Source of the DNA: Bugula neritina
Lineage: Eukaryota > Animalia > Bryozoa
Direction: 5' to 3'
DNA length: 64,000 bases
Assembly (NCBI GenBank): GCA_964035545.1
Contig: OZ037771.1
Span: 8,549,408 to 8,613,407, forward strand
This document shows positions 3,120 to 63,199 of this stretch, one piece after another. A program made the position numbers and the translations under genes. The number at the start of each line of letters is the position of its first letter. Positions within the stretch are counted from its first letter, which is position 1. The notes beneath the pieces were generated by a model. That model saw only the letters and a list, made by a program, of their open reading frames with translations, searched no databases and was not told the origin of the DNA.

Positions 3120-5200
3120 ACTTAAGGCATAAGGTAAAATATCCTTATTGTTGAAATATATAAAAACAATTCAGTGCATGGTTTTGTTTTAGTAGAACAA
3201 GGTGAGACAACTCTTTTGGGTCTCCCAAGTAGTATTGCCATAGGTTTAGTAGAAATTGCATGTGCAATTTCAAATGCTGTTGTGTCAGAGTTTTCTGATG
3301 TTTTTCAAGGTTTAGGTAAATTGCCTTGTAATCATGCTTTGAGACTTAAAAAGGCAGTGAGCATGTAATACAAAGTGCTAGAGGTGCACCATTTAGCGTA
3401 TGAGATAGGCTAAAATATATGGAATATGGAATCTAGCAGCACAATTACCAAAGTCAAACAACCAACTGTTTAGGTCCATGCAATAGTTAATGTGCTAAAA
3501 CCTGACCGGTCATTATGTGTCTGTCTAGACTGCACTGAGCTGAACAAGTGTATCATAAGGGAACACTTTTTATTACCTACAGCTACAGAAGTATTCTCAA
3601 AATTGTCATATTCACAAGTTTTCCCAACTTTAGATGCAACTTCAGATCATGATAGTAGTTTTCTCACTACGTGTGCTACTCCATTTGGCCGATATAGATA
3701 TTTGAGGCTACCTTTTGGAATAGTTTGGCACCTGAAGTATTTCATAGAGAATTAAATGAAATATTTGCAGATATAGATGGAGCTGAGACTTTTGTAGATG
3801 GCCTATTGTTACATGCTGCTACAAAGGTAAAGCATGATGTTATTCTGCGTAAAATGCTAGATAGAACAGCAAGTTAACTTAAAGCTTAATTTAGCAAAAT
3901 ATATTCTTGAGAAGTCCGGGCTTAAGTATCTAGGTCACATAGTTGGACAGGGTATCACAAAAGCTGACCCAAATAAAATTAAATCTAGTCGACATCCCTT
4001 TGCCACAAAATGTAGAAGAGTTGCTAGACCGTATGAGCACGTATTTAGTAAAGCTTCGTCTAAATTTAGCAGAAATTACAGCCCCACTGAGAGAGCTGAC
4101 AAAGAAGGTCCTTCATGGGTTTGGGATAGTAAAAAAGAGCAGTCAATGAAAGAACCCAAATCTATTGTAGCTAGTGGACAACTTCTAAAAATGTTTGACC
4201 TTGCTCTGCCAATTGAACTTAGTGTAGACAGTTCACAAAATGTAATAGGAGCAATAGTTTTACAGAATGATCAAACAATACAATTTGCCAATTGTAGCTT
4301 AAACAAGGCACAAAGAGCTTAAGCACAAATAGAAAAAGAATTTTTAGCTATACAGTATAGGTTAAATAGGTTTCATCAATATGTACATGGTCAAAAAAGT
4401 GTTGTAGAAACCGATAATTGCTTAGCATTGCTTAGCATAAAAAAAGGGTTTAAACGATTCAACACCTAGACTAACTCCCATGAGGCTGAGAGCTCAGTTA
4501 TATGATTTTGATCTTGTAGATAATACCTCTAAATGTTCTGCCATAAGCTTTGGGCCAAATAAACAACACCAGTCAAACTATACACTCAGTTCCTCTCCTA
4601 TTCCATCGGTTAAAAGCACAAAATATCTTAGCATCACCCTACAGCACAACCTGAGCTTCAACAAGCACATTGATGTAAAAATTGAGAAAGCAAGTAATAT
4701 CTTAGGTGCTATAAAATATATACTCCACTCTGCGCCAAAACACAGTCGCCTTCTTGCATACACTAGTTTATGTAAACCCATTTTGGACTATGCTGATACG
4801 GTGTGGGACCCAGCCACTAAAAGTGTAGCAGAAAGATTAGAAAGGATTTAAAACAAGGCTGTAAGATACATAAGTGAACTGAAGGGTCGTGAAAGTGTTA
4901 CTGATGCCAGAAACCAGCTTGGGTTGAAGACGTTTTCCGAGACAGTTTCCTTCCCAGGACCATATGCGATATGCGTCTATTACAAAATGAAACTGATGAC
5001 TAATGTCAAACAGCGTTACGCTAGAACCTCAGACCATAGTTTCTGCAACACCGTTTTTATTTAGCACACCCGAGGCGCTCTGCTTGTGCTTCTAGTAATC
5101 TCGAGCGTGCAAAGGATACAGAGGTAATACAGAGGTAAACCTGGTAGCCAGATGTACATAGCTGATGCATTGAGTAGAGCACTTTTCATAATGATATTGA
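3120..5200 (+). mobile_element. Ty3/Gypsy LTR retrotransposon pol remnant (protease C-terminus, RT, RNase H), interrupted by a LINE fragment
   Basis: TTLLGLPSS, EFSDVFQGLGKLP, KPDRSLCVCLDCTELNKCI, TPFGRYRYLRLPFGI, FVDG (decayed YxDD), LSVDSSQ, AQIEKEFLAI, VETD, YDFDLV, resuming after the insertion as KPGSQMYIADALSRA at 5137-5181. No LTRs recognised. Confidence 0.88.
4521..5138 (+). mobile_element. 5'-truncated non-LTR retrotransposon 3' fragment nested in the Gypsy RNase H region
   Basis: NTSKC...KYLSITLQHNLSFNKHI...LAYTSLCKPILDYADTVWDP is homologous to the C-terminus of the LINE at 7590-8050; ends in a short tandem tail (TACAGAGGTAA-type); TAA is shared at both junctions. Confidence 0.85.
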
Positions 5201-5549
5201 TGATCAAAAAAAAGTTAAGGTTAAGGTTGATGATACGAGATTACTCCAACAAAAAGCTGGATACACTCACTTATTAATAATACTTGACAATAATATATTG
5301 TTTAATCTAATAATAATTCATATTGCATTATCATTATGACTATGATTATTGCCATAAGCCTAAGAGCTAAAGCATAAGATGTAGTACTACTACTAGTACT
5401 AGTAGCAGTAGTCTAGGAGTAGACAAAGACTAAGACATCAGACATGTTGGCGCGTTTTTGCTAAAACTAAAAGTAAAGTCGCACCCACAGGATAATAACA
5501 AACTTTGTAATAATATTCATGATGTTTATAATTTACTATAAACATTTAT

Positions 5550-8107
5550 TTGAATCAAATATCAAATAATATATTATCTCTTGCTATGAATTACGATATA
5601 GTGTGTGTCACTGAAACCCATGTTGATGAGAGTGTCACTGATAAACAAATCCTGGATCTCTCTCAGAAGACTGTCTTTCGATGTGATAGGAACCTTCACG
5701 GTGGTGGTGTAATGATTGCCATTGACAATAAACTGAGTGTTAAACATGTAGAAGTCGGATCAGCAGACCTGGAAATAGTTGTCCTAAGACTAGATGATAA
5801 TACTATTATTGGGTGTTTCTATAGACCCAACATTGCACACAGTCTCTCTCAATTTTGGCTTCTCCTCGAAGAAATTTCTAGCAAATATCCTACCGATCGA
5901 ATAATCATAACTGGTGATTTCAATCTTCCTATTGTTGATTGGAAATATACCTAACTAAAAAAAAACTGCCAATATCAAGCCCTTCACCAAGAGTTTCTCA
6001 ATTTAATTGCTGAAAATAACCTGACTCAACTCATTGACCAACCTACTCACATCCAGGGTAATACTTTAGATCTCATTCTCACAAATCAACCCAAAGACAT
6101 TCAATCAATCAATATTGTTGAACCTGGCTTAAGTGACCACTTTCTTATTGAGGCTTCTATACAACATAGAGTGGCTACTACTAGTGTCACACCTCAATTG
6201 AAATACATTAAACTATACCGCCAAGCTAATATTGAGGGTTTCTGAGAACAAATGTCTCATGTACAACTTCAGCTGGAAGAAATGAGTGATGTCGATAGCA
6301 TGTGGCCGCTGTTTGTCTCCCAACTTAGAACCTCAATCTCTAACCACGTCCCTATAAGAATATGCAAACCAAAAGGTGATCAACCTGCATGGTTCAATCT
6401 TAGAGCGAAGAAGCTAGTCCAGAAACAACGTGAAACGTATAACAAATTTAAACAAACAAATGACCCTTTTTTTCTGACAAAATACAAACAACAAAGACGT
6501 GACACTAAACGCACTCTGAGAGAACTAAGGAACAACTATACTACTGAAGTAATATGCGGACCATTGGAAGCTGGAAACAGCAAACCCTTCTTTAAATATC
6601 TGAAGAATATTCAGAACAAAACAAAACCCATGCTGACACTTACTCACCCTAATGGTACTTCCACAACTGATCCTCGAGAAAATGCTGAGATACTCAATAA
6701 TTTCTTTCAGCAACAGTTCTGCCAGCAAAATTTCTACACCGACGACCTCCCTTATCACTCTGATGATGATGATCTGAATGTGACTCCCGAAGGGGTGGAA
6801 AAGCTTATGAACGATCTCAAAACTGGTAAGGCACCTGGTCCGGACGGACTTAACAAAGAGGATCTCTGCATCGATACTAGATTGATAGCCAACGGCCTAA
6901 CACTAATCTTTAACGCATCCTTGCGCAGTGCCAAACTTCCTGCGGGATGGAAGCTAGCCAACATCATCCCTGTCCACAAGAAAGGCCAACTAGATATGCC
7001 AAACAACTATCGACCAATATCATTAACCAGTATACCTTGCAAGTTACTGGAACACATTGTGCTACACTATCTCAATAAACTGTTAGATCCCATCCTCCAT
7101 AATCGTCAACATGGTTTCCGTCGTGGCTTGTCCTGCGAAACCCAGCTTTGTGGAACCCTCCATGAAATTGCCAGGTCAATGAACAACTCTCACACCACTC
7201 ATGCTCTTGTTCTCGACTTCCAGAAGGCCTTCGACAAAGTCCCCCACAAGCTACTCATACATAAGTTAAGCGTCGTTGATGAAATTAATCCTCACATACT
7301 CCGATGGCTCCAGAATTTTTTGACAAAGCGAGAGCAGCAAGTAATCATAGATGGCCACTCTTTTGGTAGATTACCAGTCTTTTCTGGCGTTCCACAGGGC
7401 TCTGTCCTGGGGCCCACCCTATTCCTTCTTTACATCAATGATCTCCCTGATCTACTAAGTTGCAGTGTCAGTTTATTTGCTGATGACACACTGATTTTTC
7501 AAGAGGTAGACTCCCTAGATGATGTCCGAAAATTCCAAAAGAATATTGAACAGATTGAGAATTGGTCTCTGAAGTGGAAGATGCCGTTCAACTCCTCAAA
7601 ATGCCGAATCATGTCATTTGGCAAAGATCCCCAAATTCAACCATCATATCGACTAGGGGGAGAAACATTGCCCTACGTAGATGAGATTACCTACCTTGGA
7701 GTTACACTACAATCTAACCTCAAGTTTCACAGCCACATAACTAAAAAAATAAACAAAGCATACAAGGTTCTTGGCATGCTAAAGCTATCCCTCTATGGAG
7801 CTCCCAAGAAAGCAAAGCTGCTGGCATATATGACTCTCTGCAGACCTATACTAGAATACGCTGCAACCACTTGGGATCCTGTAACAAAGCAACTTGTGAA
7901 AGAAATTGAGTTAGTCCAGAACCGAGCTATTAGATTCATCTGCTGTCTCAAAGGCCGGGAGGCTAGCATCAGTGATGCAAGAGAACAACTCAACATATCA
8001 TCACTGGAAGATCGTCGCAAAAGCCTACGAATAACCCTCCTTTTGAAGATCTTGCGCCTTATGGTGATCTAGCGTGTGCTAAAGTCGAAGTAAGAAGTAA
8101 GTAAGTA
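5550..8107 (+). mobile_element. Non-LTR retrotransposon ORF2 (AP endonuclease + RT; CR1/L2/Jockey-group-like), few lesions
   Basis: APE motifs DIVCVTETH, RCDRNLHGGGV, FYRP, GDFNLP, GNTLDLILTN, LSDH; RT motifs KAPGPDG, YRPISLTSIPCKLLE, QHGFR, LDFQKAFDKVPH, GVPQGSVLGPTLF, LFADD. Disrupted at ~5954 and ~6243; (AAGT)n tail at 8088-8107. Confidence 0.93.
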
Positions 8108-43820: not shown

Positions 43821-46800
43821 CTACACAACGTAAACTAACTTCGTTACAGGTTCATTAAACCCAGATATACAGATCTCACTTGTCGGAGATACTGTAAAGA
43901 CACTATCATCTGATACATTGACAAGGCCACTCTGCAAATTATCCGGTTTCGGCATCCTCCGTTGGTCTTGGGGACATTCATATGTGCGTAGTTGAATATC
44001 AGACTTGTCTAAAATTACGAAACACTTATATTTAGTCAAGCCTACCTACACAAGTCACATTGTTAAATTTTTGCTTAAATTCATATGAATCAAAGACAGG
44101 CACTCAACTTGTGTAAGCTAGTGAATGGTCATTTGATGCTAGCATAGTTGCTATATTGAAGTTCAAAAATTGTTCAAACAGAATGACAAAATGATTTCTT
44201 TTTCTTTTGTAACACACAATACCTAATTACTGGCTGATTGGTGCACGAATCAGTATAACTTGAAAAGAAAATTGATTGAATTAAGTTCAACAATTCAGTG
44301 CTAAAAGCAATTAAAAACTGATTAGGTAAACTGGCTGGGCAAACAGAGTGAATGAAGTTTCACACAGTGCAAGAGATGTTTATCGCTCAGTTAAATAATG
44401 TTCTAAATTTGCAGCATAACTTCTGCTAAAAGTGTTCACTGGTGTGAAAATATTGGAACTCTAAGTTTGTACCATAGAGAAAGGCATTTTAACAAGAATA
44501 TCAGGAAATATTTAGAGGAATGCTTGTATTTATCATAAATCAACAGACTAATTGATATACCAATTGATAAATTGATTAATGGTATAAAACAGCAATGTTA
44601 ATAAACCAGTAGGCATTTATGCCAATTGGTACATCAACTATACATCAGAAGATTTTAAAGTAGAGGTTTAATAAAGACAGCAACATATTCCTTAACATAT
44701 TGCAACAGACAATAACTACACATAAAGGGGCCACACAAACTTTTCCAACTGAAGGGGTCTATATACAAATATCATAGTGCAATCAAAGAAATGATGGCAT
44801 GCAAAGTTATATATAGAAGTTTGAGGGAAGATTTTGACTAATGAAAAGTTTGTTCAAGTTTCTAAACGAAAGCTAAGTATATGCTTTATTAATTCAGCCT
44901 TTGGGAGAGGTTTCAACCCTCTCCCAATGGCGTCACATCTATGACTACATTTTCTAAAAGTTCCAAATTTACAGGGTAGTCTTATAATGAAAATCTCGGT
45001 ACACACCACTTCTGTTAGAGTGTGAGTGAGCATCGTTTATTATAGAGCATTAATTGAGTTTGTCAGACTGAAAAGCTTACTAGCTAACTTAAGCATGTAC
45101 AAAGTGCTACCAGACAATAGTTGAACATCTCTAGGTCCACCCATCAACTAAAAATTACTTGTGTTAAAACTTTCTTAGTTGCTCCTACTGACCGATGAGA
45201 AAATAAACTAAAATAACCCACTGAAATATTCACACCAACATTACAACATAAAATACTAGCATGAAAATAATAACTTGCAAGTTGTTCTATAAATTTTGCG
45301 AAGCAATAAATGAATATTAAAGTGAAATATATCTATAACAAAACTTGTTGTTATCAAGAGAGAGCTAATCTGTTGTAAAGATTTGAGTTTTAAACCATTT
45401 TGGAGCTTTAGATAGAAGACAATTCCAGAAAACAAGAGATTCTACCTTTCACTATATTCTGTAAGTGAGAGGCTATCCTAGCTTTGACAACTCCGGCAGT
45501 TTCATTATTGAATATAGGGAAATCAAAGCCGAAGACACCATTGCAAGGCTGAGGGTTAGCCAGGTTAAGGGAGGCAGCTGTGAGGACCATGAAGGGCTTA
45601 TTCGGTCTGCAGTCATCCTTTATACTGTCCACAGCGTTACTGGAGTCACATATCTCTACGTCTTCCAGCTAAAGAATATTGAGATTCTACAATACTGAAT
45701 AACTCCAACAAAAACGCTAACTGAGATTGTTATAATTGGGGAGACAATTTCCACTTGAGAAGACTGGAGAGAGTTCAAAATAAACGAAGTTATGAAGCAG
45801 CTGCAGATATTAAATCATTCATATGACATAAAATTGATCGGACTATATATATGTAACAGTCTCAAGGGAGTTCAAGCCTTCCTCATGACCTATGAAAGTG
45901 TGTGAGGAGAAAGGGAACACTGTATCTCATTTGAACAATCTATGCATTTGGTTCAACAAATATATCCGGCATGGCCTAATGGAGAAAGTTCATAGATATA
46001 TGTAGTGAATAATGTACAACTGGTGGTGGTAGATTCTCCTACTGAGAATCTTCACACTTACATCCAGTGTCTTCTTGATGTACTCCTTACATAGACTTAG
46101 CACTTCCATCTCATCGACTTCTGAAGTCGTATTTAGAGCAGATGGGCCGTCCCTCTCAACATTCTCCTGTAGGACCACAATACATTAGATATTATATTAC
46201 ATAGACATATGGTACATATGTAATATAATATTACATATACATATGGTACATATGTAATATAATATTGCATATACATTTTTTTGATAAATAGAAAAGTAAC
46301 TTTCTATTTAATAGAACTTTTGAAATGAGGAGATACACTTATAACAATAAACAAGTACCTGTAATTCTAGAAATAATATACTATGAGCGAAACTAAAAAC
46401 CAGTTTGGTAATTTGAATGAATTTTGACTTCTAGATTACCTGTACAGCCAATCTAACTAAAGACTGAGGACCTATCAATAATTTTTTGTTTTACTAAGTT
46501 CTAATTCTGTCATTAGCCAAAATTATAAACACCTACCTTCAGCAAAGCAACAAAAGGCATTAGTTTCTTCTTGTGTTTGGAAGGTATGTCCACATCTTTC
46601 AAAGCAGTTACTATTGTCCTATTGTCTGGCAGAGTGTTGGTATCATCCAACAGCTCATGTAACTTGTGTAGAACTCTATCCTGCCACGGAGGGAAATTCT
46701 TTGCAACCCAAATTATAGCATGTCGAGGCTTGAGCTTCTTTGCAGCTTCTTCCTTAGAACCTATTAATGAACACGTGCTATTATATGCCGAACAACCTAT

Positions 46801-49800
46801 ACATTAAATACCGGCTCTTTTATATGCAGGGTATTTAATTCATAAATGAAAAAAAATATATACACACCACCCTATAAGTCTAATAAGATACTGCAGTGTA
46901 GTTAACTATATCAACACTATGAGTATACCACTGTACTAAGGAATAGTAGAGATAGAGATATAACACTATACTAAGGAATAGTAGAGATGGAGATATAACA
47001 CTGTACTAAGGAATAGTAGAGATAGAGATATAACACTATACTAAGGAATAGTAGAGATGGAGATATAACACTGTACTAAGGAATAGTAGAGATGGAGATA
47101 TAACACTGTACTAAGGAATAGTAGAGATAGAGATATAACACTATACTAAGGAATAGTAGAGATGGAGATATAACACTGTACTAAGGAACAGTAGAGATGG
47201 AGATATAACACTGTACTAAGGAATAGTAGAGATGGAGATATAACACTGTACTAAGGAATAGTAGAGATAGAGATATAACACTGTACTAAGGAATAGTAGA
47301 GATGGAGATATAACACTGTACTAAGGAATAGTAGAGATGGAGATATAACACTGTACTAAGGAATAGTAGAGATGGAGATATAACACTGTACTAAGGAACA
47401 GTAGAGATGGAGATATAACACTGTACTAAGGAATAGTACGAGATGGAGATATAACACTGTACTAAGGAACAGTAGAGATGGAGATATAACACTGTACTAA
47501 GGAATAGTAGAGATGGAGATATAACACTGTACTAAGGAATAGTAGAGATGGAGATATAACACTGTACTAAGGAACAGTAGAGATGGAGATATAACACTGT
47601 ACTAAGGAATAGTAGAGATGGAGATATAACACTGTACTAAGGAATAGTAGAGATGGAGATATAACACTGTACTAAGGAATAGTACGAGATATAACACTGT
47701 ACTAAGGAATAGTAGAGATGGAGATATAACACTATACTAAGGAACAGTAGAGATGGAGATATAACACTATACTAAGGAACAGTAGAGATGGAGATATAAC
47801 ACTATACTAAGGAACAGTAGAGATGGAGATATAACACTGTACTAAGGAACAGTAGAGATGGAGATATAACACTGTACTAAGGAATAGTACGAGATGGAGA
47901 TATAACACTGTACTAAGGAATAGTAGAGATGGAGATATAACACTGTACTAAGGAATAGTAGAGATGGAGATATAACACTGTACTAAGGAATAGTAGAGAT
48001 GGAGATATAACACTGTACTAAGGAATAGTAGAGATGGAGATATAACACTGTACTAAGGAATAGTAGAGATGGAGATATAACACTGTACTAAGGAATAGTA
48101 GAGATGGAGATATAACACTGTACTAAGGAATAGTACGAGATATAACACTGTACTAAGGAACAGTAGAGATGGAGATATAACACTGTACTAAGGAATAGTA
48201 GAGATGGAGATATAACACTATACTAAGGAATAGTACGAGATATAACACTGTACTGAGGAATAGTACGAGATATAACACTGTACTAAGGAATAGTACGAGA
48301 TAGAGATATAACACTGTACTAAGGAATAGTAGAGATGGAGATATAACACTATACTAAGGAACAGTAGAGATGGAGATATAACACTATACTAAGGAATAGT
48401 AGAGATGGAGATATAACACTGTACTAAGGAATAGTAGAGATGGAGATATAACACTGTACTAAGGAATAGTACGAGATATAACACTGTACTAAGGAACAGT
48501 AGAGATGGAGATATAACACTATACTAAGGAACAGTAGAGATGGAGATATAACACTATACTAAGGAACAGTAGAGATGGAGATATAACACTATACTAAGGA
48601 ACAGTAGAGATGGAGATATAACACTGTACTAAGGAACAGTAGAGATGGAGATATAACACTGTACTAAGGAATAGTACGAGATGGAGATATAACACTGTAC
48701 TAAGGAATAGTAGAGATGGAGATATAACACTGTACTAAGGAATAGTAGAGATGGAGATATAACACTGTACTAAGGAATAGTAGAGATGGAGATATAACAC
48801 TGTACTAAGGAATAGTAGAGATGGAGATATAACACTATACTAAGGAATAGTACGAGATATAACACTGTACTGAGGAATAGTACGAGATATAACACTGTAC
48901 TAAGGAATAGTACGAGATAGAGATATAACACTGTACTAAGGAATAGTAGAGATGGAGATATAACACTATACTAAGGAACAGTAGAGATGGAGATATAACA
49001 CTATACTAAGGAACAGTAGAGATGGAGATATAACACTGTACTAAGGAACAGTAGAGATGGAGATATAACACTGTACTAAGGAACAGTAGAGATGGAGATA
49101 TAACACTGTACTAAGGAATAGTAGAGATGGAGATATAACACTGTACTAAGGAATAGTACGAGATAGAGATATAACACTGTACTAAGGAATAGTAGAGATG
49201 GAGATATAACACTGTACTAAGGAATAGTAGAGATGGAGATATAACACTGTACTGAGGAATAGTACGAGATATAACACTGTACTAAGGAATAGTACGAGAT
49301 ATAACACTGTACTGAGGAATAGTACGAGATATAACACTGTACTAAGGAATAGTAGAGATAGAGATATAACACTGTACTAAGGAATAGTAGAGATGGAGAT
49401 ATAACACTGTACTAAGGAACAGTAGAGATAGAGATATAACACTGTACTAAGGAATAGTAGAGATGGAGATATAACACTGTACTGAGGAATAGTACGAGAT
49501 ATAACACTGTACTAAGGAATAGTAGAGATAGAGATATAACACTGTACTAAGGAATAGTAGAGATGGAGATATAACACTGTACTAAGGAACAGTAGAGATG
49601 GAGATATAACACTGTACTAAGGAATAGTAGAGATGGAGATATAACACTGTACTAAGGAATAGTACGAGATGGAGATATAACACTATACTAAGGAATAGTA
49701 CGAGATATAACACTGTACTAAGGAATAGTACGAGATATAACACTGTACTAAGGAATAGTAGAGATGGAGATATAACACTATACTAAGGAACAGTAGAGAT

Positions 49801-52800
49801 GGAGATATAACACTATACTAAGGAACAGTAGAGATGGAGATATAACACTGTACTAAGGAACAGTAGAGATGGAGATATAACACTGTACTAAGGAATAGTA
49901 GAGATGGAGATATAACACTGTACTAAGGAACAGTAGAGATGGAGATATAACACTGTACTAAGGAATAGTACGAGATAGAGATATAACACTGTACTAAGGA
50001 ATAGTACGAGATAGAGATATAACACTGTACTAAGGAATAGTAGAGATGGAGATATAACACTGTACTAAGGAATAGTAGAGATGGAGATATAACACTGTAC
50101 TAAGGAATAGTATGAGATGGAGATATCAGTGTATTTACTCAGTCTGCAGGTGTTAGCTCACAGTCAATGAAAGAAAAAAACAGTTTACAAGAAACATTAG
50201 ACGAAGCAAGATGGAGATTGATAGACAATGGATAATGGTGGTCATGATGACTGCAATAGCAGCTTCCAAGACAATAGCTGCACCAGATCACTTTAATTGG
50301 GTATCCAAAGGAGTTGTGGCACCACCAAAAAACCAAGGACAGCTGGGAAGCTCAGAGCTGTACGCTGCTGCAGACGCAATTCACAGCTATGTGGCTATAA
50401 ATTCAGGAAGAATGGTGGCTCCAAGTGTCTACGAGATGAACGACTGCTGCAAGAAGTTGGAGAATCTCTTCTCGTGTGTGCTACGCCTGGGGGGCCTGTG
50501 CAGTGACAAGGACTACCCCAGTGTCACAGGGTCATGCAGGAGTCACAGCTGTCCTGGTGACATAACTATCAAAGGCTTTAGGAACGTAACAATGGGCTCC
50601 GAAAGAGACTTGATGATGGCTGTGCTGGTTAACCCTGTAGTTGTGAATATAGACGCTTCATTAGAGTCATTCCAACTGTACCGCGGAGGAGTCTACAGTG
50701 ACAGCGCTTGCTCAAGTCAGCGATTAGACCACGCCCTGCTGCTGGTTGGTTACGGGACGATGCAAGGGTCAGACTACTGGCTGTGTCAAAATAGCTGGGG
50801 ATCCTCCTGGGGTCAAAAAGGCTACATTCTAATTGCAAGAAACAAAAGTAACATGTGTGGCATCGCATCTGCTGCTTCATATCCTATTTGAAGCCCTAAC
50901 ACTATACATATATTCAGAAACATATTATGATGTATCTGTATTCAGGAATATATTAACAGTATGTATATGTATCTATTTGTTTACAAAGCCAGACTTCAAA
51001 AGCTTCATATATAAAGTTTATTTTGTGTTGGTTTAGTTTTCTTCCTGATACAACGACTCTAGCTACTACAATATATTACTACAACACTGCATTTCACAGT
51101 TCACTTAATAACCATTATTACTAATACTATACTAGTACCAATACATTGGATCATAAAGCCTGCTTAAGGAAGAAGCCACATTAGGCAGACTTCCAGCATG
51201 AACGTCCAAATACGTGAAAATTAGCTGCAGGAACCATTTAACACATTGCATTTCGTAGGGAGCGGAAATTTAATAGCTAATGATATTAGCGTTTAACTTT
51301 GCTGCTGCCCTACAGGCTTTTGTTATATAAATAAGTGAGAAGATAACTCTATATTTAAACACAAAAAAGAAAAAACTCAATTGATAGAAAGTAAAAACAT
51401 GAACTCAAAACTCAAAGTGTGCTCGCTAAATAGCAACCAGCCAATAAGATCAAATCCAGACCAACTTTCCAAACTGATTGTTCAGAATTTTGCCTGCACG
51501 GAACCCACCCACAACAGCTCATTTTTGGCCTGTGCGAATCTCCTGCATGGCCAGTACATGAAATCTTCTTAGTATGATACCCTTACATGCTGCTGCAACA
51601 ATTCAGCCCACATAGCAATGTTTTTGTGAAAAACACATGTTTTATAGCCAGCTGCTAAACAGACAAGCATATTGAGACATTGAAAACATAACACCCTATA
51701 GAGCACCCTTAAGTAGAGTGTGAACAGACGCTGGCAAAAATGAGAAAAAGTATAGAAATCAAATAGAATTGGTGAAAACTTCTCTGAACAGTGCGGTGGA
51801 GTGGTGAAAGAATAAGAGTATCACAGGTACACAACCAGGGAAACATGTGGCCAGAATAACCTTCTATTCACAGCTGAACTGCTGACAGTCCAGTCCTAAA
51901 AATCACTAAGGAGAGGCAGTTAAACCTGCTGAAATATGGTGGTGACAGCTGATTAAACGGCTACTGGAAATTTTTAATGCATTAGGAACAGTGAAGTGAC
52001 TTTTGCTGACTTAAAATACTTAACATTATACGGCTAACAAACAGAGACCTTATCTAAACATTTAACCTTTCAAAAGATGACTACAATGTACATAAACCAA
52101 GTACTTCCTTGGAAAACAGCTAGAAGCAGCACCAAGTTGGTGGTCACTGAGTGCAGTTTGAAAGTTGGGGTTTGGAGTTTAGACAAACCAATGGCTATAC
52201 AAACTCTGCACTGAGTCACCACAACTGCGTGCTGCTTCTAGCGATTTTCATCCCCTTGAGTCCAGAGCACACAGCGAGCAGAGCATACCTTTAGCCTGAG
52301 ATTTAGCCTGTGACTTAGCCGGTTTAGAGACTGTCATAAACTGTTTTGATCTCAGTCTAAACTCGTGGCAGGAATCCATAAGGTAGTCGATATCCTTGAG
52401 CAGAGAGGCATTATAAGGAGCTGTCACAGGCCACGATGCACGCATAATTGAGCTCTCCTGCAAGGTGTATCAGTTATAGTGAGTACAGAGTATCAGTTAT
52501 AGTGAGTACAGAGTATCAGTTATAGTGAGTACAGAGTATCAGTTATAGTGAGTACAGAGTATCAGTTATAGTGAGTACAGAGTATCAGTTATAGTGAGTA
52601 CAGAGTATCAGTTATAGTTAGTATAGTCAGTTCTAGTCAGTATCTAGTTTCAGGCAGAATTTCAGATTAACTATTAAATTTCAAAATAAAGCTGCCTATA
52701 TGATAGTTTACTACATGTAGCTTTCTACAAAATTTCGATATAGGAATAATATACTTCAAGTTCAAAATCCATCTAAAGATCATACAGAAACTGTCTTCCA

Positions 52801-55800
52801 CTGAACACCGATGGTTTTCCAGTCATTAGCATAAAGCTCAAGCAACATTCATTACATTACAAAAAGCTTTCTAGTAGAAACTAAATATGTATAGATTTGA
52901 AACAAACAAGCATTTGTAGTATTCAAGACATCTGCAGACCAATCAAATTCATCGATGTGGGAAGTATCATTCCTACACATTCTACAACAGCTAGTCAATT
53001 TTCTAATCATTCAAATTTTTATTACTGTCATTTGATGAAAGGATCAGAAGCATAAAAGGCACTTGACAATGTAAAGTAAGTATATATGTATATAGAAGGG
53101 TAGGAATATAGCAAGTAACAAGTATATGTATATAGAAGGGTAGGAATATAGCAAGTAACAAGTACATGCACATAACCTCAAGCTCTGAAGGGAACAGAAC
53201 ATACAGTTACTACCTTGCCGAGAAGTTGCCAGATATGCTCACAGACGTGGGGACAGATAGGGGAGAGTATGAGTGTCTGCCACTCAATGAACTGCATTAT
53301 GAGATCCTGTCGCATCTGACCCTGGGTCAGCTCTCGGTACTTGTCTTTGGCAGCCTGGAACTCAAAGAAGCCGGTTCTCAGGGCTTCTTTAAACATCATC
53401 TTCTCATAGTAATCCTTAGTCATGTTTACCTTGTGGTTCATCTCACTGTACAATACCACACTGTTACATTAGTATTTACACTCTCTCTGCTATTCTGTGC
53501 TGCTTTATGTCTTACAATCACCTTGACCTTAATGGTGCTCTACGATCACTAGATAATATTAATAACCATGAAGATTCATGTACTACTTTACTTAAAAACT
53601 TAGGTGTTGAGAAGATTGTAAATTTAGGAGGCCATAAAAATGTCAATAAACTACAAATTAGTGCTGACTTCTTAGTCGATCTTAAAATCGGAATGAATTT
53701 AAAAGCAACATTTATTGATGCCATAGAATCGAGCTTACAACAAACTGTGTAACACACGAGTCGAGCCCACAAAGCTCCAAGTACTATTTCTCAAGTTAAG
53801 TGCAAGGAAATAGCCTCTGGCAGAATATTCTCTGTATAGTAAGACCCAGTAATAAAAGGTAACCCATGCACCTGGTGAAGCAGTCATCAGCGAACTGATG
53901 ACCTGAGGAGTTGATTCTCATTTCCTCTTTGCTGCTGAGCACCTCCTTCACCCACTCTATCAGATTGTGGAGACGGAGGAGCCCGGCATCAGCCATAGTC
54001 TCTACAAAGTTGGCATCTTCCACCGTGTCTCCGGCATCAGCTAGTGACATTCTCATACCTGCAGCACCACGTACAGTGTAAACAGGAGTTTGTAGACAGG
54101 GGTGTATACAGGGGTGTGTACACAGGAGTGTATAGACAGGGGTGTGTAAACAGAAGTGTATACAGGGATGCATAGATAGGGGTGTAAACAGAAGGGTACA
54201 GACATAAGGGTGTACACAGGAGTGTAGATAGGGATGTAGATATGAGTATGATAGCCAGAAGTACATGTATGGAATGGTGAATATTTTGTTGAGCTGATGC
54301 TAGATGATGAAGGATTTGCTTTAGAGGCACTATTCCCAAAATTTAAGAATTTTAGCTAATAATTTAATAAACTGTTGAATCATATAACTGTAGGTGTAGA
54401 CGTTTATTGATGCTACAAGCAGTTCTTCCATTCTAAAATATTTATAGCTGCTCTTTCATATATTGTTGCAAAGCTTCAATATAACAAAATATCCTTGAGC
54501 CCTCTAAATAATTTATACAATATCAAAGACCAAAGCCCAATAAAAATAAACTAGTTTGTACAATTCAATGACACACTTCAAGTCCTTTAAGCCCAACAAG
54601 TAAATATGTGAGAGGACAGAATAATGTACGACATACCATCTGCAGAGAACTTTTCAATTGCGTCAGTCATAGTAAGGAAGTTGCCTTCTGATTTTGACAT
54701 CTAAATAGATCATATTATAGTTTAAAAGCTTATTGTAACAATTAGATTCCACTTAGCAATGCACTGCTGTATTAGCTGTATTAAACTCATTTGCTAGCAC
54801 TTCATGTATCATTAGTTGAAGCATAAAGTCAACTTTACCATATGTGACAAGTAGCTTAGTTTAGGCATGTCTTACAGTCAGTTCTCATGAAAGGTTATGA
54901 GAAGGTCATAAGTCACTCACTTTCTGTCCATTGAGGAGGAGATGGCCATTGGCCCGAATACCTTTGGGCCACTTGCTTGGGTTGTCAGGCCACATAGCCA
55001 CATGGTTATAGAGATAGTATGTGAGATGGTTTGGGACAAGATCCTTGCCAGACGCTCTGAGGTCTACCGGATACCAGAACTCAAACTCTTGCCGTAGTTT
55101 AGCTAATTTCTCAATGTGTATCTGAGCGTGCTTAGGTGGTGTTGATGTTTGACAAAAGATGTAATCCCAGACCTAGGAACAAGGACACACTATGACTCAT
55201 TGTACACTATACCTGTTGAGGTAGTGCTTCTTTATTGCTGACACAAATCAGTGAAATACTTTCGCAGAGCATTAATTAGGTGAGCATTTGACTACATTAA
55301 CTACTAGCAGAAGTTCTTATAACCATTCAACTTATCAGAATAGGTTGGATTGACCGTAGAATATATAACCAGTTGCACTTCACCTCTGGAGTGAGCTGCT
55401 CAGGGGTGATACAGAAGGGCCCCATCTCAGAGCCATTAAAGTTGCCCTTAGCCTGAAGAAGATGGCACACGGTGTAGTAGGCGTTGTATATAGTAGAATC
55501 TGAGAGAGACTCTATCAAATACTGAGTGTCCCAAGGCATCTTTGTACCTGCAACCATTCACAGTATAGTAAGATTGTAATGTAATGTAGCAAACTGAAAA
55601 TATAGCCCTTATTGTTCCACTCAACACTTTACTGTGCATAAAACTCCACAACTAACCAACAGAGCCCAGTAAAGGCTATATTTAGAGAGCTGATGTATAA
55701 TAAAGTCAGCAGTAGTGGTAGTAAGTGTCTCTAAATAGAATTTGTTATCAAAAAGTGTAAAGTTTTACTTCACACACTTCTGCTTGCATATCTCTATTAC

Positions 55801-58800
55801 AAAGAGAGACAGCTGAGTAAAGCAGTGAGATGCTGCTCTCACCTAAGCCATAGGATCTGGAGCATGCATGCTCGTGCAGCCAATCCAGAGTGGAGCGGAA
55901 ATTCTCCTTAACAGAGCTCGTGTACGTCTCACACTGTTCAAGTGCTTTCTCCGTCAACTTTCTCCAGTTCTTCTCTCCGTAGTCCAGATACCTAAAGAGT
56001 ACATGCAACTGTACAACCCATCACACATAGAGAGACCACAAGCAGAGTTATGATGTATTCATGTGACATCTAACACACATCTCATTAGTTTCGTCACTCC
56101 ATTTATACTGGAGCAATTATCATCTAGTAACCTATATCAAGTGATTGCAAACATAAAAATTATAATCGTTGAAGAAAATTAATTGATTATGAAAACTTGA
56201 ACAATTATTCTTTTCCAAACTTATTAACCTGATTAATAAATCATTTCTAATCAGTAGTTCCAAGGTAACAATATTTATTAGTATTCCTATTCACATTGAA
56301 AACTCGAACTCACGAGGATGAGAAAGATTGAATAAACCTGACCTGAACTTCTACAAATCTTCTTTAATAACATACTCAAGTGTTGTTATAAGTTAAAAAA
56401 ATTGCTAAAAAAAGAAAATGGTGACTATTCTTGCAATATGCATTTCACCGGAGCTTTTTGCTAATACAAATTAGCCACTCATTGAGCTAAAACTTAGTTT
56501 GATAGGGCCAATGGAAACCTTTGTTGAATTGATCATGTGGTCCAAAATTACTATTGTCTTCGGACCATTCAAAGAATGATTTTGGGCAGGAAATGTTGTC
56601 TGTATGAATATACCATTATCAAAAAACTTTGAAGTCATTTACATTCCTTTATCACCCAATTCTAAACATTTGCTGGTGATATGATATAAACTGCCTCAAA
56701 ACTCCAGTCCTTTTAACTCCTTTTAACTAAACCCAAGAATGAAAAAACATGTTTCATCAATTTTTAATTAAAACATAATTTTTGGTGAAATAAAGAGAAT
56801 CATTCTTAATAAGTACAAGTTTTGGGCAGGGGGCACATTGGCAAGAAAACCGCAAACCAAACTTATTCTATGAAAAGGGTGCCTATAGAATTTACCACTG
56901 ATCACAGAGAGCTACGACACACTCATCGCCAGATCGGGACATAACCTTCCTCTCCGGCTCCATGTATTTAGCTGCCAGCTTGTCATCATACAGCTTCTTC
57001 TGAATCTCCTTTTTTACATCAGAGACTTTGCGTCCTTTATAGCCATCAACTTGAAGTATCTGTCCGAACCAGAAAGGACACAATAGAATGTTATGGAGAC
57101 AATAAAACATCATAGACACAATCAAAATAGGTTATGGCCACAAGAATATTTTAATGCAAGAAAACTCTACCTGCAAACTAGCCCATACATTACTAGGAGT
57201 AAAGAATTGTTGTTTCCATTAAGCTTTGGCACAAAAACAAATTCCACGTGCAATTTCTGTTAACCACTCAATTTCTAAACTTAGCCATCACACGCAATTT
57301 TAATAATAATTTTGAAAATAGATGCTATAACTGCACATCTTATTTTATTGCATACAAAGTATTATCACATGCGGCCAACTGTCATGCTCAGTGTTAACTG
57401 CATATACTCACGCCTTCATTAAACCCTTTTAAGTATACTTCATCTTTCGCTTCAGCCAGCTTCACGCTGTCATTTTGACTCTGTATTTTCAACTTGTTAT
57501 ACATAAAGACGGCAGCGTGAGGGCCATACCCGGGTATATTTATTATCTCAATCGGTTCATAGGGCAGCACCTGGGGATATGATTAAGTGATAAACTAAGG
57601 CTAAGACAGCGACATCTTCAACGCTAATAATAAACTAAGGCAGCTACAATGAAATCTGCAACACTAATAATAATAAACTAAGGCTATTACAGTGACATCC
57701 ATTACATAATATACAATGTCTAATAACATCTATAACACTAGTGATAGAAACTACAGTACTAAAGCAGCATACACAACACAAACTGGTGAGATACTGAGAA
57801 TAAATGTCAACTTACCATATGATCTTTTAGTCCATGTTTGGCTCGGAAATCTTTCTTCTTTTTGAGATCCTCGAGGGCGGCATAGTCATCAGGAGAGTCT
57901 GAAGGTACAGAGGTGACAATTCCAGTCCCCTTGTCTTCCTTGATGGTCATCATAGGTAAGGCGTACACTTTATCATTGCTTGTCAGTGGTGCTTTCAAAG
58001 CCACGCCCATTAGATTCTGTAGAATAGGTACAGTATAATATGTAGATGTGTAGAGTATAGTATGTAGAATAGATAAAGTATAATATCTATATATAATGTA
58101 TGCAATAGAATACGTAAAATGTAGACCGGTAACAAATAATTTTCATTTCAATAAATTATATATAAAAACAGACAAAGTCCTAGAGTGCGATTTTAGCACA
58201 GATTGGAGTGTAGTCTCCCCCCAACAAACATACTGGGACATACTGGAGAGACATGAGTTTACAAAGTGACCAAAAGCAGCCCTAGTATTAATACTCAATA
58301 AGAAACGAGTGCAGCTAAACGGTTGAACGAGTCAACAGCTTGCATGAGCATATAATTGCATATACTAAACAAGAAATCAACACAAATAACCTCTTGAGTT
58401 GATTTCTCAACACCCCAGTAGTATGAATATACCAACATGACCCTATTATATGTACATACACTGCCTTGGATGGTAGCCATGACGTCATAAATCCCATTTT
58501 TAGTTGTAAAACCTTGGTAGCTCATATTCCTCGCCGCTCTTTTAGTAGAAATAAACACCTACAAACAAAGTTAGTTACTGCAGAATATACCTATAGCCTT
58601 CCTATACCAGTGCTAGTAGTAATGGACCATGAAATCTTTCCATTCACATTCACAATAAAGAGAATCTTCTACACTGTATAGGTACAGTTTACTATGAATA
58701 TCCAAACATACAACTACATTTTGTATAATATTTGTGGAATACAACGTTGTACATTATTTAAGCAGGCTTCACTCACTTCCGGCCCACATCCAGGCAGGTT

Positions 58801-61800
58801 GACTGTGAAAGCAACATATTTGATGTTAGGGTGAACCCAGCAATTAGTTTGCCCAAACATAGTCTCAGGTCTTAAGGTGGCTGCCACTAGATATATGGGC
58901 AGGTCAGTCTTAAGACCCCTAAAATACAAAGATAAAACACACCTGCATATATCTATATATTTAACAGTAGAAAATTGAATAATGGAAAGTTTCCAAATCT
59001 TTTCAATAAAATCATTAGACTCTAAAGTCTACATAATATAAAATTCACAAAGAGAGGATGACTGCTGAAATAAGATTGATACCGAAAACAATGCGAAAGC
59101 AAAACTGACCGGGAAACCCAGCCATAGCCTTAAATTGCACCATTAGCCATGTTCAACATATTTTGGTCAGTATGCTGTGAAGGATATTATATGAAAAGAA
59201 TGACTACACCAAGTAAAGTTATAATATAAGTACAGTAGACGTACTCAATGTGAGACAAGGAATCCAGAACTCTCATCTTCACCAGAGTTTGCTCCTGGGG
59301 GCCAACTCCCTCCCCGGAGCTGCGGTCATGGTCCATACAAGGCTGATCATCCTTTGGAGAATAGATGGTATATCTGCAATAAATACAGCAAGTCTACTCA
59401 TTTGAAATGAAATTCTTTCAACCAAAAACAATCATAGTAAGCAATTTAGTTGAAAGAATCTTCAATAATAATTTAAACTCGTTATAACAGAATAAATGAA
59501 AACCCAGTTTAGACATGTTGATAGGCTAATTAAAACTAGATATAGCTGCAATGATATAAACAAAAAACACTAAAGACCAACACAATATATAATTTAGACA
59601 GCCGCACACTTACCTCTTTCCAAACTCTATCTTTCCCCGTTCTTTCAGACGAATAAACTGCCACCTAACAAATGAGTCATAGAAAGGATTGACATCAGTG
59701 GTGATGAATGATCTTCTCCAGTCAACCTGCACAGACACAGTAGTGAGTTACTTAACTGTGCAGACACAGTAGTGAGTTACTTAACTGTGCAGACACAGTA
59801 GTGAGTTACTTAACTGTGCAGACACAGTAGTGAGTTACTTTACTGTGCAGACACAGTAATGAGTTACTTAACTGAATAGAATAGTAAAACATTCCAACAA
59901 ATAATGAATTGGTGAAACCCGTGATAGTAATTATTTATTTAAATAACAAGTTATGACTAATAAAACTACTGCCAACAGTTAAGGGCCCAGACTATGAAAC
60001 TAGACATATCATCAATATTGACAAGAAAATTATCCTTACAGGAAAAAGAATCACCAATACTATACAGTCATTGGTGTTAAAATGCAAAACAAAAGGTGCT
60101 AAGCTGATTTCCATCACCTTCAGTCCCATCTTCTTGCAGTCATCCATGCAGTGTGGAGGAAAATACTTCAGCCAATGCATTGGGTCAGCAAACAGTTTGA
60201 TTTCCTCGTCACTCAGGTGGATACTCTGCATTATCTGCCACTGGTACTTAGCAGCCACCTGTTTGGCAGCAGCCTTGCTCTGCATGGAATAGAGTACACA
60301 GAGTACATCAACATGTGCATTAGAATATAATAAGCAGAAGGTTTGCTTTACCATTGAGTCTGTTATGAAAAGGGAAGATGTTAATACACAGTCTATACTC
60401 GACACATTTTATAAATCTCAACTATTATCTAGAAATATTGAACTTGACCTCTACACCAGACAAAACAATATGATTGGCCGTGTTCTACTATTCATACTTA
60501 TGATTAGCATTGTACAGGCAACAGCTGAGGTTTAGCGGCCATCTTGTAGAAAACATAGATATAAACACCAATGCTGAGCTGAGTATTGAGTTGACGGAGT
60601 AGAAAGTGTTGAGTTGACTGAGTAGAAGTGTTGAGTTGACTGAGTAGAAAGTGTTGAGTTGACTGAGTAGAAATTGTTTAGTTGACTGAGTAGAAAGTGT
60701 TTAGTTGACTGAGTAGAAAGTGTTTAGTTGACGGAGTAGAAATTGTTTAGTTGACAGAGGAGAAAGTGTTTAGTTGACTGAGTAGAAAGTGTTGAGTTGA
60801 CTGAGGAGAAAGTGTTTAGTTGACTGAGGAGAAAGTGTTGAGTTGACTGAGGAGAAAGTGTTTAGTTGACTGAGGAGAAAGTGTTTAGTTGACAGAGGAG
60901 AAAGTGTTGAGTTGACTGAGTAGAAAGTGTTCAGTTGACTGAGTAGAAAGTATGCACCTTTTTGCCCTTTGCCTTGTCCTTTATTACGGGATCAGAGCTC
61001 TGAACCTCTTCAGGTGCAACAGCTTCCTCTTCCTTCGGGAAGTTTGGAGGATACCCAAAGTCCTCCATTTCCCTTTTCAACTTGTCGGCACATGCCTACA
61101 ATGTACAGGTATTAGAGAGGAGTGAGACATTCTGATGCACATAATAGGGTAGCAGTGGTAGTCCACGGGTTGGGGCGCAGGCCTAGTGTGACACAGGTCA
61201 TAGGTTAGAGTGCAGGTCATTGGTGAGGTCAGGAAGAACATCAGAATCACGGGCTTTCCATGTACCGACCTTAGATCGATCTCGCTGAGAAATGTGCTCA
61301 GATCGATCGTTTTTCCATGAGAGTGTCAGATCGATCTCGCGAAGTTGCCTCCTTTTAAGTAAAGAATACTTTAAAAGTATATTTTGTTTACCTATTTGAG
61401 TGATTAAAGCTACTACTGTTGAAAACAAGACGGTTGTAGTCTAAAATTTAATCCCAGCTATAAACTATACGCAGCAAAGCTTTCAGTGTATGGTAATTTG
61501 GCCGATTTAAAATAATTAATTTTAATTTTTTAGCTTGACAGCCTATATAAAATTAATGACTGTCTTGCAGATTATTAATAAACTTACAGGACTGTTAGGC
61601 TTAAAATCACAAAGAAAATAGCTAATAAAACTAAGTTTTAATAGTCATTTAAATTCAGTTTAAATTCTCCCATTTTTTTACCTTCTACTGCATATAATTG
61701 AGTTTTTTTTAATCATTGTACTGAAAGTCAAAGTTTTGGCATCTGAAAAGGTGGCTATCGTAATTATTAAATACTTTGCTTAGTAATTATCAATAAGTTA

Positions 61801-63199
61801 TCATTTTTATTAGCAGACAACATTGTAGCGTGCAGTCTTTTTCTATTTCTCAGATCGATCTGGCGTCTTTCCATGGTCTTATTGACATGAGATCGATCTG
61901 AGTTCGAGCTCCACAGACCGACCAGCTCAGATCGACGGAGATCGATCTTTGGCGTCTTTCCATGGATCGATCTCGCTGAGATCGATCTGAGATCGGTACA
62001 TAGAAAGCCGGTAATTATAATTGCTCCTATAACTGAGTAAAAACCATCAAACCCGAATAATTGAGGGCACAGAGCTTCTTAAGACACTTGAGATCCCTTG
62101 CAAGCAGGGGTTCTCACAGGGGTAGAGACTTTAAAAGCAAAACAAATTTTATAAACCTAGAACACAGGACACACATGTATAGAACAAAATAATATAACTA
62201 ACATCATATAGAGCTTATAAGGCAAGTTTTGAGATGTTATTTTGCATAACAATGCAAGCTATTGACCTACAGAAAAAGTGAATGAGTCACATAATCCTTA
62301 CCTTGATTGGCATTCCCGTGCAGTGAAATCCAAAAGGAAACAAACACTTCTTTCCTTGCAGTCGTTGGTAACCAGCAGCAAACTATAAAATTTAACCATA
62401 TATTTAGAAGTGCTAAACATTAAACAATTGTTTATGATAAATGTTTAGGGCTCTAGGCTGACGAGAAATTCCCTATCCAGTAATAACTAGAAGAACTAAT
62501 GAGAGTGATAGACTGAAGACATTGCTAATGATCCAGTAGTTAGACAACTAGCACAGTAAACTGCTGCTAATGCATGATCTTTTGAACAAGTGTAGTTGAG
62601 GAAAGGCATGACAGGTAAGTTTTGAATGCAGGACTTTTCGAGTGAAAGTTTGATATTTTAGGACTCACACAATGAGCTTGACTTGATAAAAGTTATAATT
62701 ACCTCACATTTGGATAAGGAAAAAGTGTGTCCCAAGTGCAGTCGACCATTCATATAAGGATACGGGAAAGTACACAAAAACTTCTCGCTTCTAGAATATA
62801 CAATCAATTGTTAAAATTAACATGCAAACATACCAGACGCCATTCTAAGTAATTGTGTTTTGAACCCATTAACTTGATTGCATCAAGATTAGGCCTACAT
62901 AGGGAGGGGTAAACTTCCATGTAGTGGGCTAAACCTTTACTGATGATTAGTGGAGCAAATATTATTCCCATTGCTATCATAACAACATGTTTCAGCAATC
63001 CTAAGAAACACATATCAAACAAGACACTATATGTTGTTACAGGCTTGTGTACATTAACTGATATTGATATAGTATGATAGTCATACTTTTCATTTGATGC
63101 ATCAACTTCAAACGTTTTTTCCCGTTCCCATTTTGCTTGAATGTCTCTTTCAATAACTCTCAACTCATCCAGCTTAGCTGTACCTTTCCTTGCCGCCAT
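43821..63199 (-). CDS. LARS1: Cytosolic leucyl-tRNA synthetase, multi-exon
   Basis: Start [17 protein letters not shown]; HIGH-type [14 protein letters not shown] (~62730-62770); [10 protein letters not shown]; [24 protein letters not shown]; [16 protein letters not shown]; CP1 [15 protein letters not shown]; [17 protein letters not shown]; [11 protein letters not shown]; [13 protein letters not shown]; KMSKS split by the intron at 54920-54702; last exon ends [11 protein letters not shown] at 43821. Confidence 0.97.
46928..50126. repeat. ~3.2-kb minisatellite, 35-bp unit (CTGTACTAAGGAATAGTAGAGATGGAGATATAACA)n with 30- and 36-bp variants
   Basis: Roughly 90 highly similar tandem units within LARS1 intron 46761-52288. 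Confidence 0.98.
50211..50891 (+). CDS. Single-coding-exon secreted papain-family (C1A, cathepsin L-like) protein with Cys25->Ser and no propeptide, nested antisense in a LARS1 intron
   Basis: Intact 226-aa ORF: signal-like N-terminus, [89 protein letters not shown]. Confidence 0.92.
   Translation: MEIDRQWIMVVMMTAIAASKTIAAPDHFNWVSKGVVAPPKNQGQLGSSELYAAADAIHSYVAINSGRMVAPSVYEMNDCCKKLENLFSCVLRLGGLCSDKDYPSVTGSCRSHSCPGDITIKGFRNVTMGSERDLMMAVLVNPVVVNIDASLESFQLYRGGVYSDSACSSQRLDHALLLVGYGTMQGSDYWLCQNSWGSSWGQKGYILIARNKSNMCGIASAASYPI
52467..52640. repeat. 23-bp intronic minisatellite (GTATCAGTTATAGTGAGTACAGA)n
   Basis: About 7 units adjacent to a LARS1 acceptor. Confidence 0.93.
54075..54245. repeat. 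Degenerate ~16-bp tandem repeat (ACAGG(A/G)GTGT-based)
   Basis: Imperfect units just upstream of the LARS1 acceptor at 54059-54060. Confidence 0.8.
59727..59875. repeat. 29-bp minisatellite (CTGTGCAGACACAGTAGTGAGTTACTTAA)n overlapping a LARS1 acceptor
   Basis: About 5 units. Confidence 0.93.
60575..60951. repeat. 23-bp minisatellite (GTTGACTGAGTAGAAAGTGTTGA)n
   Basis: About 16 units starting right after a LARS1 donor (minus strand). Confidence 0.95.
61248..62013. mobile_element. Non-autonomous DNA transposon (CMC/EnSpm-like MITE) inserted in a SINE copy
   Basis: TIRs CACGGGCTTTCCATGTACCGA...TCGGTACATAGAAAGCCGGTA, AT dinucleotide on both sides, multiple subterminal AGATCGATCT palindromes; the flanks rejoin into the SINE body AGGAAGAACATCAGAAT|TATAATTGCTCC. 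Confidence 0.75.

Follow-up and report, generated by a model that had tools for sequence, protein, structure and literature searches.

A single-exon bryozoan gene for a probably inactive cathepsin-L-fold protein from an animal-wide clade

Inactive protease homologues are more and more often seen to serve as regulators and matrix proteins. In the C1 family, several secreted homologues in which the catalytic Cys is replaced are thought to act mainly by binding; these include the cathepsin-B-like matricellular proteins TINAG and TINAGL1, and Plasmodium SERA5, which carries Ser at the nucleophile site. The familiar inactive examples from the cathepsin L group are lineage-specific, the sponge silicateins among them. 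Silicateins are known only from sponges and keep the Cys22 bridge, the GCxGG loop and the propeptide. A working Ser-based triad has been proposed both for silicatein and for SERA5. Here we describe a gene of the bryozoan Bugula neritina that encodes a cathepsin-L-like protein with Ser at the position of the catalytic Cys. It lies at 50211–50891 on the forward strand of a 64,000-nucleotide stretch (assembly GCA_964035545.1, contig OZ037771.1, positions 8,549,408 to 8,613,407), which we call the window and whose numbering we use throughout. Our preferred reading, to which we give a probability of about 0.72, is that this is a functional single-exon gene whose product is probably a secreted, catalytically inactive cathepsin-L-fold pseudoprotease, and that it belongs to an ancient animal-wide C1A clade.

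The protein shares its fold with cathepsins L, K and S (MEROPS C1, C1A) over the whole mature domain, together with the equivalents of Gln19, His159, Asn175 and Trp177 and two disulfides. Unlike those enzymes, it lacks Cys25 (and with it the Cys25–His159 pair of an active C1A peptidase), the Cys22–Cys65 bridge, Trp26, an intact GCxGG-Leu-Met loop and the I29 propeptide, and it has additional cysteines (C80, C89, C97, C114 and C192). Silicatein alpha of demosponges (PDB 6zq3; chimeric 'cathsilicatein', 2vhs) is likewise derived from cathepsin L, with Ser at the Cys25 position and with His and Asn kept. Ser, His and Asn are also present here (S48, H174 and N194), but the Cys22 bridge, the GCxGG loop and the propeptide are missing, and the Ser is not conserved among the protein's relatives. 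TINAG, TINAGL1 and SERA5 provide the functional analogy that we favour, although they belong to other C1 subfamilies and domain contexts and have no specific kinship to this protein. The protein described here most likely acts by binding and is non-catalytic.

The protein and its remodelled cleft

The gene and its landmark residues, all on the forward strand, are:

50211–50891 (+): complete single-exon coding sequence for the Cys-less cathepsin-L-like protein (list of open reading frames; PF00112; AlphaFold2 (AF2) and Foldseek; ratio of nonsynonymous to synonymous substitution rates, dN/dS)
50211–50279 (+): residues 1–23, hydrophobic leader (putative signal peptide) fused straight to the mature domain (Kyte-Doolittle profile; orthologue leaders)
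50280–50888 (+): residues 24–226, papain-fold domain whose start, APDHFNW, is the start of mature cathepsin L (alignment to mature cathepsin L and K chains from residue 1–3)
50334–50336 (+): Gln42, equivalent to the oxyanion-hole Gln19, retained (alignment; Q in 40/44 clade members)
50343–50345 (+): Leu45 at the Cys22 position, with the disulfide partner loop deleted (alignment; clade columns)
50352–50354 (+): Ser48 (TCA) at the catalytic Cys25 position (alignment; orthologue codons TCA, TCG and GTA)
50445–50552 (+): remodelled L-domain segment running from DCC (C79, C80) via C89, C97 and C109 to C114, which takes the place of the GCxGG-Leu-Met S2/S3 loop and bears the clade-specific cysteines (clade-specific conservation; Cys covariation)
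50730–50732 (+): His174 (CAC), equivalent to the catalytic His159, retained (alignment; H in 42/44 clade members)
50790–50792 (+): Asn194 (AAT), equivalent to Asn175, retained, with Cys192 two residues earlier (alignment; N in 43/44 and C192 in 24/44 clade members)

The open reading frame (ORF) encodes 226 residues and a stop codon, with zero internal stops. Residues 25–226 match Pfam PF00112 (Peptidase_C1) across profile positions 2–220 of 220 (E = 6.6e-48; 164 bits against a cut-off of 20.7), and the mature chains of cathepsins L and K match it from their first residues (best E = 5e-49); identity to cathepsins L, K and S is 35–43%. In these alignments QLGSSELY lies over the QCGSCWAF of cathepsins L and K; the full ten-residue active-site motif departs from the QGQCGSCWAF of active enzymes, and there is no Cys at or adjoining the Ser48 position. 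Trp26 is replaced, the equivalent of Trp177 is kept, and the columns of the G-N-x-G-C-x-G-G-L-M loop are missing, a 12-residue segment taking their place. Judged by its residues, a protein with Ser48 and without Cys25 cannot be a cysteine peptidase.

The predicted structure is that of a cathepsin. The AF2 model we used was built from an 89-sequence alignment (predicted local distance difference test score, pLDDT, 93.3; predicted template modelling score, pTM, 0.89) and replaced a 10-sequence model that was too poor (pLDDT 63.5). Foldseek places it on cathepsins L, K, S and V with template modelling (TM) scores of 0.82–0.89, root mean square deviations of about 2 Å and a probability of 1.00, and the fold surrounding Ser48, His174 and Asn194 is modelled with high confidence. 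A feature search of the ESM Atlas returned generic Peptidase_C1 clusters only. Two of the three canonical disulfides are kept, C56–C98 as C79–C109 and C156–C209 as C167–C216. The new cysteines covary in presence and absence over 174 domains (phi = 0.81 for C97–C114 and 0.63 for C80–C89), and these two pairs most likely form replacement disulfides in the L domain. Cys192 has no evident pairing partner.

The leader reaches a Kyte-Doolittle maximum of 2.6 over 10 residues, and AF2 models it as a helix with low confidence. From this hydrophobicity and from the leaders of the orthologues, which provide the putative signal peptide and cleavage site, the protein is probably secreted. In each of four orthologues (P0001–P0004, 53–92% identity) the ORF likewise opens with Met and a hydrophobic leader that runs exactly up to the mature N-terminus, and an in-frame stop precedes it; in the window gene this stop lies 18 codons 5' of the ATG. 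The Pfam I29 model has no match in the protein, and a genome-wide I29 scan found ten loci, none of them inside the 64-kb window. We also built a propeptide profile from the propeptides of the protein's closest clade relatives and scanned six frames of the window and of the corresponding sister-species contig, where it gave noise only. In a canonical paralogue the same profile picks out the propeptide exons at E ~1e-7.

These results bear out much of what the initial annotation had read from the DNA: the intact ORF, the Ser codon TCA at 50352–50354, the His and Asn codons at 50730–50732 and 50790–50792 and the retained Gln all stand at the positions it gave. The exchange of Cys22 for Leu and the missing GCxGG partner loop recur in the alignment and the clade columns, and the direct junction of leader and mature domain holds, with no I29 match in the protein or in any of the six frames. 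An upstream exon supplying a propeptide, which it had named as a finding that would overturn its reading, did not appear in the 64 kb.

A clade marked by a DCC motif

A HMMER search returned 27,812 C1 relatives, and we sorted the best 150 of these by their residues at the catalytic and Cys positions. A recurrent signature emerged: no Cys22, a variable residue at the Cys25 position, a 'DCC' motif, and retained His, Asn and Trp; extra cysteines stand at positions 89, 97, 114 and often 192 of the window protein. The window protein shows every state of the clade, namely loss of Cys22 and Cys25, the loop deletion, DCC, C89, C97 and C114. We then placed it in a maximum-likelihood tree of 139 mature domains (IQ-TREE, LG+G4, quick search, support from the Shimodaira–Hasegawa-like approximate likelihood ratio test, SH-aLRT, without bootstrap, and no named silicatein included). 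A 44-row clade (SH-aLRT 96) holds all DCC-type proteins and zero proteases with Cys22 and Cys25. Within it, the window protein falls in a 10-row subclade (SH-aLRT 97) with two Lingula proteins.

Across the 44 members the nucleophile column reads Ser in 15, Val in 13, Ala in 10, Pro in 3, and Gly, Thr and Asp in one each. The G-N-x-G-C-x-G-G-L-M columns, which contribute to S2/S3, are deleted in about 39 of the 44, and the equivalents of Gln19, His159, Asn175 and Trp177 are nearly invariant. The subclade itself varies at the nucleophile site: it includes Val (P0004), Ala (Lingula P0005 and P0009, P0047, P0053) and Gly (P0056). Ser is encoded there by TCA or TCG and Val by GTA, and Ser, Ala and Val are single-step codon neighbours. 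This pattern fits a site that would need a small residue and not a nucleophile, Ser being one tolerated option.

The clade members come from a brachiopod (Lingula), molluscs (Saccostrea, Mya, Solemya, Haliotis, Babylonia and Liolophura), a rotifer (Adineta), echinoderms (Strongylocentrotus, Diadema and Acanthaster), a hemichordate (Glandiceps) and a calcareous sponge (Sycon). Named examples are Lingula anatina P0005, Saccostrea P0007, Mya arenaria XP_052780813, Strongylocentrotus purpuratus XP_780996 and Sycon ciliatum XP_065178271. The window gene is not a bryozoan novelty; its family spans sponges to deuterostomes. The proteins carry automatic names only ('procathepsin L-like', 'cathepsin L1', 'cathepsin J-like'), and a literature search turned up no description of the DCC family, no study of what any member does, and no paper that cites the family's accessions or names the sequencing runs used here. 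The clade is apparently an ancient animal-wide family that has gone undescribed; the initial annotation had said that membership of an already characterised family would refute its reading, and the family to which we can assign the protein is this one.

Most named members of the clade keep I29, whereas the window gene and those closest to it have one exon and lack the propeptide. I29 is also missing from the RefSeq models of Sycon (239 residues) and Glandiceps (269 residues). Four further single-exon, propeptide-less members (221, 221, 207 and 238 residues) stand head-to-tail, about 2 kb apart, in another organism (ENA ERZ19433661; loci L037, 10001–17469, and L038, 10001–17417). Given these two models and the four tandem genes, the short form recurs across the family. 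The Lingula genes are multi-exon where the window gene is single-exon: P0005 and P0009 have at least five exons, with I29, and Sycon has two. In Lingula anatina, P0005 and P0009 form a tandem pair of multi-exon, I29-bearing, Cys-less genes (LFEI02000304.1; L034, 8001–17638), and duplicated exon matches in the P0009 region suggest a third, partial copy.

Selection, genomic setting and origin

The sister-species gene, P0001, lies on a contig (L023) from a 2016 'symbiont metagenome' study. This contig is colinear with the window through non-coding DNA at 84–89% identity, and we therefore assign it to a sister species. Between the two genes dS is 0.155, dN is 0.039 and omega (dN/dS) is 0.25 (Fisher p = 2e-5); the dS value agrees with the 13–14% divergence of the flanking non-coding DNA. 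For P0002–P0004 the synonymous sites are saturated, and the ORFs are still intact. A second individual of the window's own species (run X1) differs at about four synonymous sites and about four amino acids. The window gene is under purifying selection.

The initial annotation had judged the Ser codon unlikely to be a fresh lesion, and this view is upheld: TCA is two substitutions from TGT or TGC, dN/dS is 0.25 and intact orthologues reach deep. It had also argued for a selected, non-proteolytic role, naming a lack of expression with a dN/dS near 1 and a lack of orthologues with the same losses as the marks of a recent pseudogene. A fresh pseudogene is rejected by the dN/dS value against the sister species and by the deep intact orthologues. 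The selected role gains support from the same ratio, from orthologues in which nucleophile, disulfide and propeptide are likewise missing, and from the lack of an upstream propeptide exon.

The gene is nested in antisense within an intron of LARS1:

46761–52286 (−): LARS1 host intron, within which lie the tandem array and, in antisense, the entire ORF; its ends are placed to within a few bases (exons via TIGR00395 and PF24810; RNA contig junction)
46924–50126 (no strand): tandem array, 93 copies of a 35-bp unit, that stops 85 bp short of the ATG on its upstream side (Tandem Repeats Finder)
46533–46760 (−): LARS1 exon encoding the RagD-binding domain (RBD_LARS1), the upstream-side neighbour; left boundary approximate (PF24810, E = 2.2e-14; translation; splice junction)

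The LARS1 gene, mapped on the minus strand at 46533–46760, 52287–52463, 54912–55175 and 57819–62789, spans at least 16 kb of the window. A sister-species RNA contig (run X6) splices 52287 directly to about 46760, so the intron covers about 46761–52286. The sister species has the same nested arrangement, with about 316 bp between the ATG and the opposite-strand LARS1 exon. The 35-bp array (94% matches) takes up the greater part of the intron on the upstream side of the ORF; since L023 has only about three copies, the array has expanded recently. No LARS1 is annotated among the neighbours of clade members on L036–L038, and contigs L026–L028 are too short to tell.

Further repeats lie nearby. At about 52119–52157 a short dispersed repeat occurs in very high copy number: the contig depth of run X1 climbs there from about 110 to about 13,500, and 52119 and 52157 are points at which hundreds of contigs stop or diverge. 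Tandem arrays follow to the right of the ORF-bearing intron at 52467–52623 (23 bp × 6.8) and 53083–53168 (40 bp × 2.2), and short tandem repeats beside the gene likewise terminate the contigs that carry orthologues P0002 and P0004.

The other C1A genes of the genome are canonical, multi-exon and I29-bearing. A recent retrocopy of a genome paralogue was considered and rejected, as the other C1A loci (the C3 pair, C6, C5 and C7:8.25 Mb) all have QGQCGSCWAF and GCxGG; no Cys-less parent gene was found in this genome. The window gene is an uninterrupted copy with intron-bearing relatives, which suggests, as the simplest origin, an old 5'-truncated retrocopy. The event would be older than orthologues at 53–57% identity, so any poly(A) remnant or target-site duplication would be expected to have decayed.

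Cathepsin and leucyl-tRNA synthetase genes also occur on small contigs of the assembly (C147, C220, C190, C306, C244, C291, C202, C274 and C185; loci L002, L005–L011 and L013–L017). On most of these contigs the genes contain many in-frame TAA and TAG codons (19 TAA and 2 TAG in the leucyl-tRNA synthetase gene of C291). Such codons point to a ciliate-type genetic code, and the small contigs are thus probably from an associated ciliate or a contaminant.

Rival readings and the meaning of the family

On the reading we prefer, Cys25, Trp26, the Cys22–Cys65 pair and the S2/S3-forming GCxGG-Leu-Met loop were lost in the clade, and the DCC...C...C...C pattern was gained. The remodelled cleft would still present Gln19, His159, Asn175 and Trp177, and would serve binding and not catalysis; at the N-terminus of the central helix, where Ser48 lies, a small residue (Ser, Ala or Val) would be tolerated, and Ser48 would simply be one of these. 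Zymogen latency is of no use to an enzyme without activity, so the propeptide may have become dispensable and been lost; that loss would probably date from the entry into the LARS1 intron of a 5'-truncated retrocopy, made from an ancestor with several exons and a propeptide, which then gained a signal peptide. The extra disulfides may aid folding without the propeptide as chaperone. Because the cleft is remodelled, capture of cystatins looks less likely as the binding role.

Several observations weigh against this picture. A pure scaffold role does not account for near-invariant Gln, His, Asn and Trp without a nucleophile. The disulfide pairing is drawn from covariation counts that lack phylogenetic independence, the retrocopy origin from the lack of introns alone, and many of the propeptide-less relatives are prokaryote-style ORF calls on metagenome contigs. 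Expression is a further concern. Our view of it is the depth of assembled contigs, a weak measure, from one sample of the sister species. In two RNA-Seq-labelled runs the ORF contigs reach depths of 78.9 and 22.3, against 68.2 and 9.4–14.4 for the LARS1 intron; a LARS1 exon reaches 400–5700, 20–70 times deeper than the ORF contigs. By contig depth in that one RNA sample, there is no sign of ORF expression above the intron background.

The strongest rival keeps the enzyme alive. In the bryozoan sublineage, Ser48, His174 and Asn194 might form a working triad in a secreted hydrolase, esterase or condensation catalyst that serves, for example, skeleton or adhesive formation. The window protein shares its Ser with P0001, P0002 and P0003, the codon differing by a single synonymous change (TCA versus TCG) despite saturated dS; Gln19, His and Asn are almost invariant in the clade, and the surrounding fold is modelled confidently. 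Nevertheless, we think this unlikely. Val, Ala and Gly occupy the site within the same 10-member subclade, the clade-wide column is mixed, and the three commonest residues are a single codon step apart. Trp26, Cys22 and the substrate-positioning S2/S3 loop are gone.

Kinship with silicatein fares no better. The silicatein of the PDB matches the protein at 6e-36, more weakly than cathepsins L and K at 5e-49, and silicatein is not among the 50 best Foldseek fold matches. The nearest relatives are lophotrochozoan Cys-less proteins, an indirect argument given a tree without named silicateins. The initial annotation had spoken of a silicatein-type Ser-His-Asn triad and had proposed a phylogeny with cathepsin L and silicateins. 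Our tree, which holds no named silicatein, gives the protein a supported place in the DCC clade. Such a triad, like any catalytic or biomineral chemistry derived from it, is not supported, given the variable nucleophile column, the loss of the S2/S3 loop and Trp26 and the weaker silicatein match. The silicatein triad hypothesis is itself under test, this being the stated aim of a directed-evolution study (PMC11740617).

More improbable still is a retro-pseudogene or intronic relic without function, its reading frame still open by chance. The setting of the ORF is typical of a truncated retrocopy, a single exon in antisense within a host intron, beside a fast-evolving satellite array and with the 5' propeptide part missing, and the contig depths above give it no expression signal over the intron. 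However, omega is 0.25 where the flanks evolve at the neutral rate, ORF and leader are intact in P0001–P0004 even where dS is saturated, and the clade-specific cysteines and core residues are conserved. Least probable of all is that an undetected upstream exon encodes the signal peptide and a divergent propeptide, making the short form an annotation artefact: the closest named relatives (Lingula, oysters and a chiton) have I29 and there are AG dinucleotides between the upstream stop and the ATG, but a profile that succeeds on its positive control shows no I29-like sequence in any of the frames of the 64 kb, the sister species leaves only the roughly 316 bp noted above, five divergent orthologues all place Met and leader exactly before the mature N-terminus, and the Sycon and Glandiceps models likewise lack I29.

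Beyond the inactive pseudoprotease that we favour, a broader proposal can be made tentatively, as possible rather than probable. The DCC clade may be a secreted family more than 500 million years old, whose cleft came to serve a conserved partner outside the cell, either as a binding site built on His, Gln, Asn and Trp or as a site of non-thiol catalysis; the intronless, propeptide-free form may have been streamlined independently in bryozoans and other lineages and stabilised by the two new disulfides. If true, this would be a new class of extracellular pseudoenzyme that most phyla of marine invertebrates have in common and that vertebrates and arthropods have lost.

The gene points towards an inactive cathepsin-L clade that is conserved over sponges, lophotrochozoans, rotifers and ambulacrarian deuterostomes. 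As its proteins are annotated as ordinary '(pro)cathepsin L', protease counts are inflated and a possibly important extracellular family has passed unnoticed. The clade is also a natural experiment, both in how a papain fold manages without its propeptide chaperone and in why Gln, His, Asn and Trp are retained after the nucleophile is lost. For silicatein research it offers a caution: Ser at the Cys25 position arises readily, as one among several small residues, in dead cathepsins that have no link to silica.

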